A stretch of DNA of 64,000 nucleotides, from positions 186,001-250,000 of the IMG/VR virus record IMGVR_UViG_3300042465_005589. One strand, given 5' to 3'. A program made the translations under genes and the position numbers. Every line of letters begins with the position of its first letter. The stretch's first letter is position 1. The notes beneath the pieces were generated by a model, which made no database searches, was not told where the DNA came from, and was given only the letters and a program-made list of their open reading frames with translations. Below are positions 12,071 through 44,291 of this stretch, one piece after another.

Positions 12071-12361
12071 TTAATTAAGGGAAAAGTGAGCGAATTTTGT
12101 GTGATAAATTATGGACTTAATCTTATCCATATCAACCTCATCGTTCTGAGATTGTTTAAGAGCCACAACTATAGATATGATTTGTTTTTGAGTTAAGGAA
12201 ACATCCTCACCATTATCAATATTATTTAAAGATTGTTGTTTTACTCTGTCGTAGAAGTCATCCTTCAAAACATCCCCAATTAACTCAAGTAAGTCATTGG
12301 GGTTGTTGTTAAAGAAAGTTATAAATTGATTAATGTAGATTTCAACGTCAACATTTTTCAT
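12071..12361 (-). CDS. Hypothetical protein
   Basis: 96-aa ORF. Confidence 0.7.
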   Translation of the reverse strand: MKNVDVEIYINQFITFFNNNPNDLLELIGDVLKDDFYDRVKQQSLNNIDNGEDVSLTQKQIISIVVALKQSQNDEVDMDKIKSIIYHTKFAHFSLN

Positions 12362-12384: not shown

Positions 12385-13743
12385 TTAGTTAAAATAATAG
12401 AACCCCATTCCTTCATCTGTCAATCGTTCTTTTAATTTCTCAGGAATTTTAACATTCGGATTACTATCCTTTAAATTAATAAATGCCAATTCAGGTAAAG
12501 TCATTAAACATTCGGGCAACGATTCTAATTGTTTGTTATTTGGTAACGCCAAGAAATTTAATAATTTTAAATTACAGATTGAATCAGGAATACTTTTACA
12601 AATCTTCTCTAATTTTAACGCTTCTAAATTTTTAAATCTTCCAATAGATTCCGGAACCACCAACGCAATATCCTCGTTTGATTTATTACTAATTAATAAT
12701 CTTTCAATCGTGTCCGGTAAACTATCAAATAATTCATCAAAACCATATAACGCAATGAATTTACCGGCAGCATTATCAGGGTATGCAATATCCACAACAT
12801 TACCTGAACCACCTTTAACCAATCCTTTCGCAAACTGTGGTTTAAAATATTCTTTAAGTTCTTCACCTTTACCATTTAAAAATTCAACCAAATTAATTTG
12901 TCTGTCTCTCCTATCCATATATTGGTTTGAAGGGAAGTGAAATTGATATCTTTCTTTAGGTAATCCAGTCTTCTTACCAAATTCCGTAGCATTATTAGGT
13001 AAAATAACATATAATGGACCGTCTTTAATATAAGTGTAGAAATAACTACCACCAACGTTTGACGTACACCAATTAGTTTCATCAAACTCATCTCTCGTAT
13101 CGTAGTAACCACCAAAGTAATCAGCCGCAGCGTCACCAATTTTTGTTTTATCCTCTATTTTAACAATAGTCCAATTAGGACCAACGAAATCAATAGTAGA
13201 CCCTTCAAATTTATAAGGGTTTTCTTTAGTAATTCTTTCTTCTTTTGCCGATTTAGAATCTTTAGTTAATTTGAATTCATCAACCGCTAATGATAAAGTT
13301 TGAGGAGTATACTTATTAATGTCTCTTTCACCTACAGGTAATCTACTTTTAAATCTTTCAAATTTTAGTAAATCAACATTTAACTTATCCATATCTTCTA
13401 TGAATAAACGTCGATATTCTTTAGCGTTTTGCTTATATTCCGGAGTACCTACTTCATCTTCTAATTTAGGTTGAATAAAGTTCTTCAACATCCATTGAAC
13501 ATATTTACCAACATGTATTTTACCCATGTCTTCAAAAGTCGCACTTTCTTTATCAAACCCTTGAGGGACAGTTGTTGAAGGGTCCCCAAAGATAATATTC
13601 TTTAATGTTTCAAAATCCATAGCGCCTTTAGGTTTTTCACCAGGTTTTCTTGGTTTGTCAGAAGGTTTCACCAATTTGTCATATAAGACTTGGAAACGTG
13701 ATTGTTCTGTAATTAAAGTTGATAGTGTATTAGTTAGTCTCAT
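12385..13743 (-). CDS. Putative head-packaged protein with WCT-motif domain and C-terminal leucine-rich repeats
   Basis: Leader MRLTNTLSTLITEQ; TNWCTS...YFYTYIKDGPLYVI...RYQFHF; LRRs VPESIGRFKNLEALKL / IPDSICNLKLLNFLAL / LPECLMTLPELAFINL; late motif at 13759-13766. Confidence 0.75.
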   Translation of the reverse strand: MRLTNTLSTLITEQSRFQVLYDKLVKPSDKPRKPGEKPKGAMDFETLKNIIFGDPSTTVPQGFDKESATFEDMGKIHVGKYVQWMLKNFIQPKLEDEVGTPEYKQNAKEYRRLFIEDMDKLNVDLLKFERFKSRLPVGERDINKYTPQTLSLAVDEFKLTKDSKSAKEERITKENPYKFEGSTIDFVGPNWTIVKIEDKTKIGDAAADYFGGYYDTRDEFDETNWCTSNVGGSYFYTYIKDGPLYVILPNNATEFGKKTGLPKERYQFHFPSNQYMDRRDRQINLVEFLNGKGEELKEYFKPQFAKGLVKGGSGNVVDIAYPDNAAGKFIALYGFDELFDSLPDTIERLLISNKSNEDIALVVPESIGRFKNLEALKLEKICKSIPDSICNLKLLNFLALPNNKQLESLPECLMTLPELAFINLKDSNPNVKIPEKLKERLTDEGMGFYYFN

Positions 13744-13818
13744 TTTAATTGTTTTTATTATAAATATTTGTTTTTTCTAAATAATTCGCCAAAACCCATT
13801 TACTTTTGTTCAGCGGGA

Positions 13819-13826
13819 CAAAGATA
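13819..13826 (-). promoter_or_regulatory. Bacteroidetes-type -7 element TATCTTTG
   Basis: caaagata on the plus strand; only TTG at the -33 position. Confidence 0.5.
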
Positions 13827-13849
13827 ACGCTTATTTTTTGATATCCAAT

Positions 13850-14790: not shown

Positions 14791-14994
14791 ATGGAAACAA
14801 TCGAAGGACAAATTATTGAGGAAAAGGATATTATTTACGCCACTCCTGAACAACCTAAAAAAGAATGTAAATCTTGCAAACGTAAAACATTATCAAAAAC
14901 ACATTGGACGATGGTAATATCATCAGTTTATTTATTATTCGCATCAATATACGGGACTATTAAATTAGTTGAGAAAATAATAAGTCTTTTTTAA
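14791..14994 (+). CDS. Small membrane protein with CxxC
   Basis: KECKSC followed by one hydrophobic helix. Confidence 0.65.
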
Positions 14995-15908
14995 TTACGT
15001 TTAAATTTAACGTGTAACTTAACAAATAAGTCACCCGTATTATGAAACCCTTTAGATTTTACTCTAAGGGGTTTTTCTGTATCAAACTCTTCAGGTAATT
15101 TTATTGACATAACACCTTTAGGATGTTTCAAGTCTAATTTTTCATTTTTTAATGTATTCAAATCAAAATAAGCATTATAAATTAAATCATCCCCCGATTT
15201 TTCAAAATTATCTTCAGGAGCAACTTTAACTCTAATTACCAAATTACCATACACACCATTAACATAATCACCTTTACCCTGTAATTTTAAAAATTGACCC
15301 TCATCAATTCCATGTGGGAGTTTAATTGTAACTGTTTCAGTTTTAGTTGATGTTGTTTCACCATTACATGAACCACACACAGTTTTATATGAGAATCCTT
15401 TTCCACCACATGAATTACACGTTTGTCTTATAAGTTGGACAAATAATCCGGAACCCACTCTTTGAGTTATAAACCCTTCTCCACCACACGAAGTACAATT
15501 TATTCTTTCACCACCATTACCATTACATGGTTCACACTTATGTTTTCTATTATATGTAAAAGTTTTTTCCGAACCGTTATACGATTCTATAACACCTATT
15601 TTAACTTCAATAACCTTATCAGGTGCCGACCTTCTTCTTTGTTGGTGAAAATGATTCTGAAACATATCCTCAAAAGGATTAAATCCTCCACCACCCATAT
15701 TAGAAAATGGATTATTTTTTTGACTATCATATTGTCTTCGTTTATTATCATCACCTATCGTATCATAAGCTTCCGATATTTTTTTAAATGTCTCTTCATT
15801 ACCCCCTTTATCAGGATGGTGTTCAATCGCTAATTTACGATATGCCTTTTTAATCTCATCTTGAGTTGCGTTTTCATTTACACCTAGTGTTTGATAAAAA
15901 TTCTCCAT
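14991..15908 (-). CDS. dnaJ: DnaJ co-chaperone
   Basis: J domain with HPD, G/F-rich linker, four CxxCxGxG zinc-finger motifs, C-terminal domain. Confidence 0.95.
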
Positions 15909-23548: not shown

Positions 23549-24349
23549 TTACATATATTCATATAACACTGAACTATCATTCCTTAATTTTCGTAAGGCT
23601 TTCTCTTTAATTTGTCTAACTCGTTCCTTAGTTAGATTAAAATCACCTCCAATATCTTCAAGAGTTCTTGGTGTTCCTGTTAAACCAAAATAATCCTCAA
23701 CAATTACTTTTTCACGGTCATCTAAAACATTTAATAATGTAATTAGTTTAGCCTTTAATTGGTCCTTACTGTTGAAAGCCTCATCAGGCATATCAGCACC
23801 CTCATTTTTAATTATATCAATAAGGGTATCACCATCTTCATTGATGTTCATATCTAAATCAATCATTGATGGGAGATTTTGAAACTTATCTTCTAATTTA
23901 CCACCATTAGACTCAATTTCTTTTTTTGCTCTATGTAAATCTTGAACTACATTAACAGGTAGTCTGATTGTACGAGCATTGTCATTTAATGATTGAAGAA
24001 TTGATTGTTTAACCCACCACACCGCATAAGATATAAATCTAAGATTCTTTGACCAATCAAAATTATTAATTGCTTTCATCAAACCTAAATTTCCTTCAGC
24101 GATTAAATCAGGAAAATCTAACCCTTGATTTTGATACTGTTTTGCCACAGTAATAACAAATCTTAAATTACCTTCAAGTAATTCTTTATTAATCGCTTTG
24201 GTTTCATTTTCTGTAAGTGTCCCTGAAGATATCATTTTAGATAATTCACGTTCCCTCTCAGGGGTCATTACTTTAATCTTACGTATATCTTTTAGATATA
24301 ATTGAATCTCTTCTTGATTAATCGGAATACCCGAGTTTTTCTCTTTCAT
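23549..24349 (-). CDS. rpoD: RNA polymerase sigma-70 factor, Bacteroidetes RpoD-like (no region 1.1)
   Basis: YLKDIRK, NLRFVITVAKQYQNQGL, EGNLGLMKA, FISYAVWWVKQSI, IRLPVN, TLEDIG..FNLTKERVRQI. Confidence 0.95.
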   Translation of the reverse strand: MKEKNSGIPINQEEIQLYLKDIRKIKVMTPERERELSKMISSGTLTENETKAINKELLEGNLRFVITVAKQYQNQGLDFPDLIAEGNLGLMKAINNFDWSKNLRFISYAVWWVKQSILQSLNDNARTIRLPVNVVQDLHRAKKEIESNGGKLEDKFQNLPSMIDLDMNINEDGDTLIDIIKNEGADMPDEAFNSKDQLKAKLITLLNVLDDREKVIVEDYFGLTGTPRTLEDIGGDFNLTKERVRQIKEKALRKLRNDSSVLYEYM

Positions 24350-42047: not shown

Positions 42048-44291
42048 ATGATATATTATTTTCAAACATGTTGTGTCAAATTTAACGAATCCGACAATTA
42101 TTTCGGAGTAAATGACATTACATTAATATTACCTATTTTAGGGGAAGTTTATTCTATTGAAACCCTTTCATTTAGTGGGTGCGCTTATTTAATATCAGGA
42201 CCAATCCCATCAGGGTCGTTAATTTACGCAGGGAATAAAACTATCTCAACATTATATAACGATTGTCAAGATTGTTTGGATAACGCTTATGGTTGTTTTC
42301 CTCCTCCTCCTCCACAGCCAGCAATTAGTTATATTCAATCCAATGAATGTGATGTAATTACATTATTTCCAATGACTGTTGAATGTGATGTTATTAATCC
42401 TTCAACTGCAGGTAGTCGTGATGGTAGAGCATCTATATCTATAACAGGAGGAACACCTCCATATACAGTTACTTGGGGTGATGGTAGTATTTCACCTGCT
42501 ATCATGGATTTACAATCGGGTTCATATCCAGCAACTATTGTTGATTATTATGGTGATTTTACCGCCAATACAATATGCGTATTAACAGGACCAACCGCAA
42601 CACCAACACCTACATTAACCAAAACCCCAACACTAACACCAACACCAACACTAACGGTTACACCAACATTAACTAGAACTCCAACACTAACACCTACATT
42701 AACTACAACACCTACGGTTACACCTACATTAACACCTACATTAACATCAGGAATACCACCAACACCAACAATTACCCAAACTATAACACCTACATTGACT
42801 ATAACACCTACATTAACCAAAACACCAACACCTACCCCAACACCAACAATAACAATAACACCAGAAGTACCATCATACAACGAAACATTCACAATGATTG
42901 CAAGAAGTTTGAATAGTTTTGCCCCTGTTAGTGGTTTTGAATTTAGAATTGACGCATCACTGCCATTTAGAATTGTTTGGGGTGATGGTAATACAGATAA
43001 TTACCCTTCAGGTATTAATTATATATCACACATATATTCAACACCTTATACTGGAAATATATTAATTCAAACATCAAATTTAACATCTATAACCCAAATT
43101 ATACCTAAAAATGTTAACCCTCAAATAAATGAGAATAGTGTTAGATATTTAGAAATTGAAACTTCTCAATTAAATCTTTTAGATGGGTTAGTTGGAATGG
43201 GTGACGGTAATGGACTAAATTATTTTTTATCAGGTGATATAAGTTTATTACCGACAACATTATTATCATTAATTTCACGGTGGTCTAATTGTTCAGGTAA
43301 TATTGCAAATTTACCACCTAATATACAATATTTTCATATTAATTTGTTCTTTAATAATTATCCAAACCAATTAAATACTATTTCAGGAAATGTTTCTAAT
43401 TTACCAACAACATTAAAAACTATTATTTTAGGTGGTATAAATACCATAACAGGTAATATAAATAATATTCCTTGCCCATCACTTGAAAAAATTATGATTG
43501 CTGGTTCAAACACTATTACCGGTGATATATCATTAATGTCGACACCTAATTTAGATACCATAAATATATATGGTAATAACACAATATTTGGTGATTTAGG
43601 CGGATTATCAAATAGTGTTATGGATATAAGATTGGCTGGTGGAAATACTGTTACTGGTGATATATCAACATTACCAACAAGTTTATCACACATTTATGTT
43701 GAAGGTACTAATACTCTTTATGGTAATATTAACACATTAAACTATTCAATATTATCAACTTTACAAATTTATGGAAATAATAATATTACTGGTAATATTA
43801 GTTCATTAAATTTAAAACTAGGAGCGATTTTTGAGTTAAAGGGTAACAATACATTAACTGGTAATATTGGTAGTATAGGTAGTACTTATAACTATAACCA
43901 ACTAGCTATATACGGTAACAACACAATTTATGGTAATATTCAAGATTTACCTTCTAATTCAAAAAATGTTAGAATACAAGGTAATAACGTCATTTCAGGT
44001 GATTTATCATTAGTTCATTTAAATATCCAATATTTATATATATACGGTAACAACACAATATCAGTATTCTCAAATAGTACAAGAATTTTTACAGATTTAA
44101 GAATAATTGAAATAGTGGGAAGCGGCTTTAATAGTACTAATGTTGATAAATTATTAACAAGTTATGCTAATTCAACTTGGGTTAGTAGTAAATTATTAAA
44201 AATAAAAGGCACATCATCACCTAAATACACAAACACTTCATCATACAACACACTTCAAACAACAAAAGGAGTGGGAATAACAATATCATAA
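42048..44291 (+). CDS. Modular tail appendage protein: Cys domain, SprB repeat, Pro-Thr linker, PKD-like domain, LRR solenoid
   Basis: DGRASISITGGTPPYTVTWGDG; about 90-aa TPT tract; IVWGDG..HIY; repeats IYGNNTITGNISSL; late motif at 42019-42026. Confidence 0.8.
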   Translation: MIYYFQTCCVKFNESDNYFGVNDITLILPILGEVYSIETLSFSGCAYLISGPIPSGSLIYAGNKTISTLYNDCQDCLDNAYGCFPPPPPQPAISYIQSNECDVITLFPMTVECDVINPSTAGSRDGRASISITGGTPPYTVTWGDGSISPAIMDLQSGSYPATIVDYYGDFTANTICVLTGPTATPTPTLTKTPTLTPTPTLTVTPTLTRTPTLTPTLTTTPTVTPTLTPTLTSGIPPTPTITQTITPTLTITPTLTKTPTPTPTPTITITPEVPSYNETFTMIARSLNSFAPVSGFEFRIDASLPFRIVWGDGNTDNYPSGINYISHIYSTPYTGNILIQTSNLTSITQIIPKNVNPQINENSVRYLEIETSQLNLLDGLVGMGDGNGLNYFLSGDISLLPTTLLSLISRWSNCSGNIANLPPNIQYFHINLFFNNYPNQLNTISGNVSNLPTTLKTIILGGINTITGNINNIPCPSLEKIMIAGSNTITGDISLMSTPNLDTINIYGNNTIFGDLGGLSNSVMDIRLAGGNTVTGDISTLPTSLSHIYVEGTNTLYGNINTLNYSILSTLQIYGNNNITGNISSLNLKLGAIFELKGNNTLTGNIGSIGSTYNYNQLAIYGNNTIYGNIQDLPSNSKNVRIQGNNVISGDLSLVHLNIQYLYIYGNNTISVFSNSTRIFTDLRIIEIVGSGFNSTNVDKLLTSYANSTWVSSKLLKIKGTSSPKYTNTSSYNTLQTTKGVGITIS

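Follow-up and report, generated by a model that had tools for sequence, protein, structure and literature searches.

Phage T4 directs proteins into its head by means of capsid-targeting sequences (CTSs), propeptides of 10-20 amino acids (aa) that are cut by the protease gp21; the T4 protein Alt, for example, is cut at ITE-6 (PMC5694885). The Ip proteins of T-even phages have only their leader in common, and they are injected and counteract restriction (PMC12373910). In phiKZ/SPN3US-like giant phages, many head-internal (ejection) proteins are likewise trimmed at an x-x-E site by a gp21-related protease, and they belong to paralogous families (PMC5694885). This report concerns a gene for a 452-aa protein (P0001) in a 64-kb stretch of phage DNA (the window), which corresponds to bases 186001-250000 of the 318,164-bp IMG/VR virus record IMGVR_UViG_3300042465_005589. 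A preliminary description made from the sequence of the window had proposed that the protein is built from a leader, a helical region, a domain with a W-C-T motif (the WCT domain), and leucine-rich repeats (LRRs), in that order. Sequence motifs, AlphaFold2 (AF2) models, and Foldseek searches show this order to be correct. The favored reading of the protein, which stands at about an even chance and leans on analogy, is that P0001 is a capsid-targeted, protease-trimmed, and ejected effector whose LRRs would choose the host protein on which the WCT domain, a putative enzyme, would act.

The leader reads M-R-L-T-N-T-L-S-T-L-I-T-E. It is the most conserved stretch of P0001, and its E13 is invariant. 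A leader pattern defined as M-[KRN]-[LIFVM]-x5-9-[LIVM]-[LIVM]-x-E opens 12 of the 409 open reading frames (ORFs) of the genome, compared with 0.1% at internal methionines. Among the ORFs that carry it are the other WCT protein of the genome (o115146), a weakly PcfJ-like protein (o170451), and small uncharacterized proteins. BLAST comparison of the leader ORFs with P0001 found nothing alike beyond the leader, except in the second WCT protein, and most of the other leader ORFs lacked similarity to each other. In the P0001 family, a hydrophobic-hydrophobic-x-E motif lies within the first 25 residues of 69 of 92 full-length representatives chosen at 50% identity (background 7.5%), with a glutamate peak at position 13. 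The leader noticed in the preliminary description is therefore real, and it matches the T4-type head protease of this genome.

The prohead protease (G000 43090-43815; PF03420; 84 bits, E 1.5e-24) and a Gp23-type major capsid protein (MCP; PF07068; 218 bits, E 1.9e-65) both score above the Pfam cut-offs. Near its N-terminus, the capsid protein contains I-N-E followed by A. A second, smaller head-module protein, whose N-terminus resembles that of the capsid protein, contains I-K-E followed by A at a similar place. The LxE motif also recurs inside long relatives of P0001. Eight of these (P0221, P0260, P0231, P0236, P0238, P0251, P0261, and P0269) are 1,250-1,600 aa long and consist of two or three whole units of helical region, WCT domain, and tail. 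An LxE heads each unit in three of the four multi-unit relatives examined: LLTE/LLTE/LLNE in P0221, VLNE/ILTE/LIKE in P0260, and ILNE/QLNE in P0236; P0231 has no LxE at its unit heads. Judged from these sequences, the multi-unit relatives may be polyproteins that are cut by the prohead protease.

How close is the analogy to T4? Like Ip1-3 and Alt, P0001 has a short leader that ends in (L/I)-x-E (I-T-E in Alt, L-I-T-E in P0001), the leader is common to unrelated proteins of one phage, and this phage has both a protease and a capsid protein of T4 type. An AT-rich late-type promoter near the start codon and the proposed fate, which is ejection with the DNA and action on host proteins, are further points of likeness. 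By this close analogy, the leader is inferred to be a T4-style capsid-targeting propeptide. However, P0001 resembles neither the Ip proteins nor the Alt ADP-ribosyltransferase in sequence or fold. Its leader has 13 residues and a different consensus (M-[KR]-L-x6-8-L-I-x-E), its predicted mature form is an acidic protein of ~50 kDa with LRRs, and its gene, which has a host-type promoter in addition, is not part of the head module. The cleavage and packaging of P0001 are predictions. The propeptides of the phiKZ/SPN3US-like ejection proteins are mostly >100 residues long and carry an A/S-x-E motif, and no homology of these proteins to P0001 was detected. The features of the P0001 locus are listed in Table 1.

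Table 1. Features of the P0001 gene and its surroundings. Positions are those of the window unless a contig is given.
Feature	Position	Strand	Remarks
Coding sequence, 452 aa (P0001)	12385..13743	-	Stop codon at 12385-12387 included
Leader, aa 1-13, MRLTNTLSTLITE	13705..13743	-	Ends in T4-type (L/I)-x-E; putative capsid-targeting propeptide
Conserved helix continuation, then basic P/K-rich linker, aa 14-41	13621..13704	-	Isoelectric point 10
Helical region, aa 42-175	13219..13620	-	Conserved VGKYxQWMLKNF and DLLKFERFK...RDINK blocks; AF2 helices
WCT domain, alpha/beta, aa 176-312	12808..13218	-	Putative site C226, T227, Q267, H269, D277, D280
Cap/linker, aa 313-345	12709..12807	-	Conserved KFxALYGFDELFDSLP; leads into solenoid
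Four LRRs and C-terminal beta-hairpin cap, aa 346-452	12388..12708	-	
Host (Bacteroidetes) sigma-A type promoter candidate	13819..13848	-	-33 TTG 13848-13846; 19-nt spacer; -7 TATCTTTG 13826-13819
Phage-specific promoter-like motif TATTTATA, extended ATATTTATAA	13759..13766	-	23 nt before P0001 ATG
96-aa acidic ORF	12071..12361	-	Starts 23 nt past P0001 stop; follows the P0001 orthologue in each of the three related contigs
bS21 ribosomal protein gene	G000:C1:44411-44560	+	PF01165, 38.9 bits; outside window

The start of P0001 appears to be correctly placed. Its ATG is the first start past the upstream stop, and full-length homologues all open with M-[RK]-[ILF]-T. A word search retrieved 2,494 homologues; the close ones are 452-460 aa long, align end to end, and come from contigs as long as 332 kb.

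The WCT domain is the part of P0001 that is proposed to act on a target. The four motifs ascribed to it in the preliminary description were all found where they had been placed: WCTS at aa 225-228, YF..Y at 234-238, GPLYVI at 242-247, and YQFHF at 266-270. Because the full-length model returned only LRR proteins from the Protein Data Bank (PDB) in Foldseek, the domain was refolded alone. AF2 modeled aa 175-312 from an 82-sequence alignment with a predicted local distance difference test score (pLDDT) of 94.7 and a predicted template-modeling (pTM) score of 0.89, and with the element order b-b-a-a-b-b-b-a-a. The structure prediction that had been proposed for this domain thus yielded a confident alpha/beta fold; it did not yield a convincing solved relative. 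Among 135 copies of the domain, W225 is conserved in 100%, C226 in 99%, T227 in 99%, Y238 in 95%, Q267 in 98%, and H269 in 90%, and positions 277 and 280 are each D or N in 98%. C226 is also the sole cysteine in residues 1-312 of P0001. The conservation of W-C-T, Q-x-H, and D..D suggests an active or metal-binding site in the WCT domain.

The WCT domain is without a Pfam model, a solved structure, or a description in the literature searched. Residues 1-345 gave no match in Pfam, PHROGs, or NCBIfam, and a profile search of the PDB gave only chance-level matches. The best VIA match of the domain model was HAT1 (Z 5.2; root-mean-square deviation 5.0 Å over 101 residues), which is below the noise level of this tool (7-8). 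The top 50 VIA rows consist mostly of GNAT-fold acyltransferases (more than 30), all of them below that noise level, and Foldseek returned no GNAT match. The GNAT acetyl-CoA motif A, (R/Q)-x-x-G-x-(G/A), is absent from aa 176-312.

Is the domain an enzyme at all? The lack of a match to a known catalytic fold would also fit a non-enzymatic anchor or adaptor that fixes repeat modules to a part of the virion or core, with cysteine, histidine, and aspartates holding a structural metal. Cys, His, Asp, and Asp are typical zinc ligands, and the domain is always accompanied by swappable binding repeats and stands in two or three copies in long proteins, in the manner of a scaffold. However, Thr227 and Gln267 are also near-invariant among the 135 divergent copies, which looks more like an active site, and the conserved helical region would be superfluous for a pure anchor. 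A purely structural role of the domain is considered unlikely, though by no decisive margin.

WCT relatives are numerous. An exhaustive phmmer search with aa 1-345 retrieved 862 clusters, and the helical region, which is conserved across the family representatives, was always found together with the WCT domain. Within the phage genome itself, a search of all ORFs with a hidden Markov model (HMM) of the domain (hmmsearch) matched only P0001 and o115146. In the ESM Atlas, the WCT fold occurs in viral clusters where it is fused to LRR (template-modeling (TM) score 0.91), WG, DUF4116, or LRV repeats. Likewise, the tail after the WCT core is LRR in 47 of 106 tails and ankyrin (Ank), DUF4116, or BspA-type LRR in others, and the module is elsewhere joined to WG and LRV repeats. 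In BFVD, the fold was found in uncultured phages, in bins labeled Marseillevirus LCMAC, in Caulobacter phage CcrBL9, and in a structural protein of phage PA5oct (E 1.5e-6). The relatives found outside P0001 in the ESM Atlas and BFVD were only viral. Four BFVD matches lie in metagenomic bins labeled Marseillevirus LCMAC201/202 and Indivirus (A0A481YZT2, A0A481Z016, A0A481YW50, and A0A1V0SEJ3); one of the LCMAC proteins has ankyrin repeats, and the Indivirus protein has FNIP repeats. Either the WCT domain is present in giant eukaryotic viruses or phage contigs were misbinned.

The closest comparison with a virion protein is gp205 of PA5oct (EST35_0205), which has orthologues in MIJ3, Callisto, Paride, and other phages. 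PA5oct is also a jumbo phage with a PF03420 protease, and gp205 shares the helical region and the WCT domain with P0001. The two proteins align over aa 80-284 of P0001, starting within the helical region, with 26% identity (pairwise E 2e-11; domain HMM E 2e-21; Foldseek E 1.5e-6, TM 0.59). The C-terminal half of gp205 is not LRR, and the host and the phage lineage are different. The first residues of gp205 are MKLFEVFTLYE, and its annotation reads structural protein by electrospray ionization tandem mass spectrometry (ESI-MS/MS). This annotation is derived from the 93 virion-linked products of Lood et al. 2020 (PMC7318152).

A broader proposal, possible though rather doubtful, is that the WCT module defines a large family of modular enzymes, nearly all of them viral, that are delivered in the capsid. 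These enzymes would share one catalytic domain with a Cys/His/Asp center (perhaps a distant PcfJ or GNAT-like offshoot) and would be aimed at different host proteins by swappable repeats, with some made as polyproteins of two or three units that are cut at LxE. The WCT family, its repeat swapping, its polyprotein architectures, and the dual promoter motifs discussed below are undescribed in the literature searched; CTS-led T4-type internal proteins are already known.

The C-terminal repeats of P0001 are well supported. The preliminary description counted three or four typical LRRs, and four units are present at aa 346-369, 370-392, 393-416, and 417-441 (24, 23, 24, and 25 aa). Within the repeats, it is the x positions that vary. 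In the AF2 model, the last 110 residues form a solenoid (pLDDT >90), and the LRR proteins matched by the full model include LRRC8A, SHOC2, Leptospira LRRs, and Rsu1, with E-values from 2.6e-4. The Pfam LRR scores are below the gathering scores (22.9 versus 40 bits for LRR_14 and 10.3 versus 27 for LRR_8) because the repeat array is short; many orthologues carry a precomputed PF23598 match. The remark that such repeats are rare in phages fails in this lineage, where the WCT plus LRR gene is conserved in ~2,500 relatives and is accompanied by a second LRR protein. The second protein (747 aa; LRR_4, E 1.5e-5) is encoded at 42048-44291 (+) of the window, has no WCT domain, and has TATTTATA 29 nt upstream of its gene.

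A short LRR that recruits a target, joined to a separate effector domain and delivered into another cell, is also the design of the type III effectors XopL, XopAE, and XopAC/AvrAC. The P0001 repeats matched the NCBIfam models of XopAE, XopL, and XopAC with E 1e-6 to 1e-4, which is far below the cut-offs and reflects only the generic repeat scaffold. The effector domains are unrelated, and the Xop proteins leave through a secretion system whereas P0001 is proposed to travel in the phage capsid; the likeness is one of analogy only. Bacterial LRR adhesins are common, and the fold search with P0001 matched internalin and LRR proteins of Leptospira; the PA5oct homologue, moreover, lies within a run of genes annotated as structural. 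These points could be taken to mean that P0001 is an external virion protein, an accessory of the tail, baseplate, or fiber, with the LRRs as an adhesin for the host surface. This explanation is highly improbable, as P0001 has only four repeats and no fiber-like or beta-helix parts, its leader is of the head-processing type, tail genes are distant, and its relatives replace the LRRs by Ank, LRV, and other repeats of intracellular type.

Two promoter motifs were reported upstream of the P0001 gene, and both are present there, are position-specific genome-wide, and are kept in two of three orthologues. The Bacteroidetes sigma-A consensus consists of a -33 TTTG and a -7 TAnnTTTG ~19 nt apart. The upstream motif, TATCTTTG, lies 83 nt before the P0001 ATG and fits the -7 consensus exactly; its -33 box is TTG instead of TTTG, at a spacing of 19 nt. 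An extended Bacteroidetes-type consensus, TTTG(G)-N~19-TATCTTTGT(A/C)C, occurs at ~45 intergenic sites in the genome, and the P0001 promoter candidate matches it. The second motif, TATTTATA, has 130 copies in the genome, of which 82 are intergenic although intergenic DNA makes up 8.6% of the genome, and it stands 10-29 nt ahead of a start codon in 50 of 73 upstream copies. It also precedes a scaffold-like gene that heads the MCP operon and a 239-aa head-module gene. The T4 late promoter has the consensus TATAAATA. Since TATTTATA precedes head-module genes, it is a credible analogue of this promoter. When only the 64-kb window was considered, the short promoter patterns were not clearly more frequent than in shuffled sequences.

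Both motifs are found at equivalent positions upstream of the orthologues with 74% and 65% identity; the 59% orthologue has a spacer of just 33 bp and only the late-like motif. Genome-wide, the two motif types are paired at only nine genes, one of which is the leader-bearing o170451. At some genes (G000:C1 near 152443-153042 and 156006-156158), the motifs overlap in a composite, TATTTATATCTTTG, a sequence arrangement which suggests that host and phage sigma factors may compete or hand over at one site. The phage encodes a sigma-70 family factor at 23549-24349 (-) of the window, in which Pfam recognizes regions 1.2, 2, and 4 (E 1.5e-16 and 6.8e-15), and this factor is a candidate for reading the TATTTATA promoters. 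The conclusion of the preliminary description that P0001 is "made early and also packaged" was overstated, as it was based only on motifs and analogy.

These observations can be combined into the following model. The leader would carry P0001 into the core of the assembling prohead, as it does with T4 Alt and the Ip proteins, and the gp21-like protease would cut the leader off after E13. The mature protein would then be carried in the head and ejected along with the DNA. In the cell, the LRRs would bind one host protein, most plausibly a target of defense or takeover, and the WCT domain would modify or block this protein as a thiol- or metal-dependent enzyme. The host-type promoter would provide additional protein in the cytoplasm early in infection, and the packaged pool would come from the TATTTATA promoter.

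Several results weigh against this model. AF2 predicts residues 3-24 as a single helix, so the LxE could be merely structural. Searches of solved structures with the WCT model returned none that was significant (best Foldseek E 0.07, best VIA Z 5.2), which leaves conservation as the only ground for proposing catalysis. The N-terminus of PA5oct gp205 fits only a loose L-x-E rule, and practically no PA5oct ORF has the strict leader pattern, so that the comparison with the virion proteins of PA5oct identified by mass spectrometry is uninformative. The leader genes of the phage are not enriched in TATTTATA (4 of 12 versus 87 of 397, p = 0.31). Finally, the neighbors of the P0001 gene are non-structural (DnaJ, Dam methylase, thioredoxin, and glutaredoxin), and the head module is distant.

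One possibility is that P0001 is a cytoplasmic, non-packaged takeover or anti-defense protein, made early from the host-type promoter and again later, whose N-terminal helix serves oligomerization or partner binding. The synteny of the non-structural neighbors, the lack of late-motif enrichment at leader genes, and the predicted single helix speak for such a protein, as does the strong Bacteroidetes-type promoter motif kept upstream. So does P0099, an NCBI record of 515 aa and a 55% identical orthologue, in which a DnaJ J-domain (PF00226) is inserted in the P/K-rich linker after the leader; this insertion hints, from its sequence, at cooperation with host Hsp70 in the cytoplasm. However, the sharing of a leader with an invariant glutamate by unrelated proteins in a phage that encodes a T4-type protease, the recurrence of LxE at the unit borders of the putative polyproteins, the annotation of a WCT homologue in PA5oct virions, and the presence of TATTTATA at head genes all point away from it. 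On balance, a non-packaged protein appears somewhat unlikely, and ejection of a trimmed P0001 is the preferred reading.

Is the WCT domain related to PcfJ? Its W-C-T motif had been compared with the PcfJ motif of a gene two genes downstream. This resemblance was not borne out, because profile-profile comparison was negative and the PcfJ match of the neighbor is below threshold as well (13.7-16.6 bits versus a PF14284 gathering score of 25). Alignment of the WCT profile by hhalign was negative with the 591-aa neighbor, with the alignment of its four orthologues, and with the o170451 family. P0001 has no Pfam PcfJ match, and one of 82 copies of the WCT domain matches with E 0.09. A PcfJ match overlaps one WCT copy of P0261 with E 0.0022, which is below the cut-off. 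Among named protein-language-model clusters, 27 of the nearest 30 contain PF14284, and the BFVD fold search returned ~10 PcfJ-like viral proteins in the twilight zone (E 0.01-0.6, TM 0.33-0.40). Taken as a diffuse hint, these matches suggest that, among named proteins, the closest relatives of the WCT domain may be the PcfJ-like proteins, which are found on conjugative plasmids and in phages. In both, strands follow an x-C-x motif, but the motif is [HN]-C-[VG] in PcfJ-like proteins and W-C-T in P0001. The literature searched contained nothing functional on PcfJ-like proteins, and surveys of jumbo phages and of polyvalent proteins mention neither LRRs nor PcfJ.

The two leader proteins named above also have features of their own. 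o170451 (G000:C1:170451-172055 (-), 534 aa) has a type-A leader (MKLIESIRQIITE), a GHCG motif, and a weak PcfJ match of 13 bits. TATTTATA lies 13 nt before its start and TAnnTTTG within 120 nt, and the family of o170451 is large and conserved (1,136 matches). The second WCT protein, o115146 (386 aa, ICT...YQFHY), lies at G000:C1:114683-116306 (-) together with the adjacent 152-aa o114683, and both start with MKLIITE-x-QY. o114683 has a weak match to the PHROG 87 metallo-protease (E 2e-4), which was the sole PHROG match in a scan of the other leader proteins.

Where does this phage belong? Huge phages with a bS21 gene are freshwater phages that infect Bacteroidetes (Chen et al. 2022, PMC9723584). 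In the genome studied here, the bS21 gene is on the opposite strand in the head module (~36-50 kb), between the prohead protease gene and the 239-aa gene; a 618-aa gene of portal size, a portal candidate by size, adjoins it. Because the bS21 gene is situated in the head module with the layout described in PMC9723584, the phage is assigned to the freshwater Bacteroidetes bS21 huge-phage clade. Many lake-water metagenomes carry DNA near-identical to the phage locus, and the standard genetic code is sufficient for the genome. If the leader works as in T4, the leader-tagged ORFs (at least 12) would form a predictable "ejectome" of an abundant lake-phage clade of uncultured huge phages. The occurrence of WCT domains in hundreds of viral protein clusters with swappable target-binding repeats is a pattern typical of arms-race effectors, and the modular family, if the model is true, would be a phage counterpart of the effector repertoires of secretion systems. 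The domain may also give a first clue to what the PcfJ-like proteins of plasmids and phages do. Likewise, the pair of a host-type and a phage-specific promoter would provide a simple model for one gene that serves both incoming and newly made protein pools.

The gene order around P0001 is kept in three related contigs, whose P0001 orthologues are 74%, 65%, and 59% identical. The shared order is DnaJ, D12 methylase, the P0001 gene, a 96-aa ORF, an ORF of ~577 aa, an ORF of ~105-125 aa, thioredoxin, and glutaredoxin. The 96-aa ORF, for which a family search gave no match, is probably co-transcribed with the P0001 gene, and its product could be a partner, chaperone, or inhibitor of P0001. Contigs of relatives from RNA libraries (85-97% identity) partly cover the neighbor gene, the 96-aa ORF, the LRRs, and the methylase; this match comes from a single metatranscriptome and consists of contigs that give no start, strand, or level, with DNA carry-over possible. 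The DnaJ gene of the phage is full-length and lies at 14991-15908 of the window, two genes upstream of the P0001 gene. The DUF932 family is common on conjugative elements, and in one relative an inserted DUF932 gene (L014:6724-7473) separates the 96-aa ORF from the ~577-aa weakly PcfJ-like gene.

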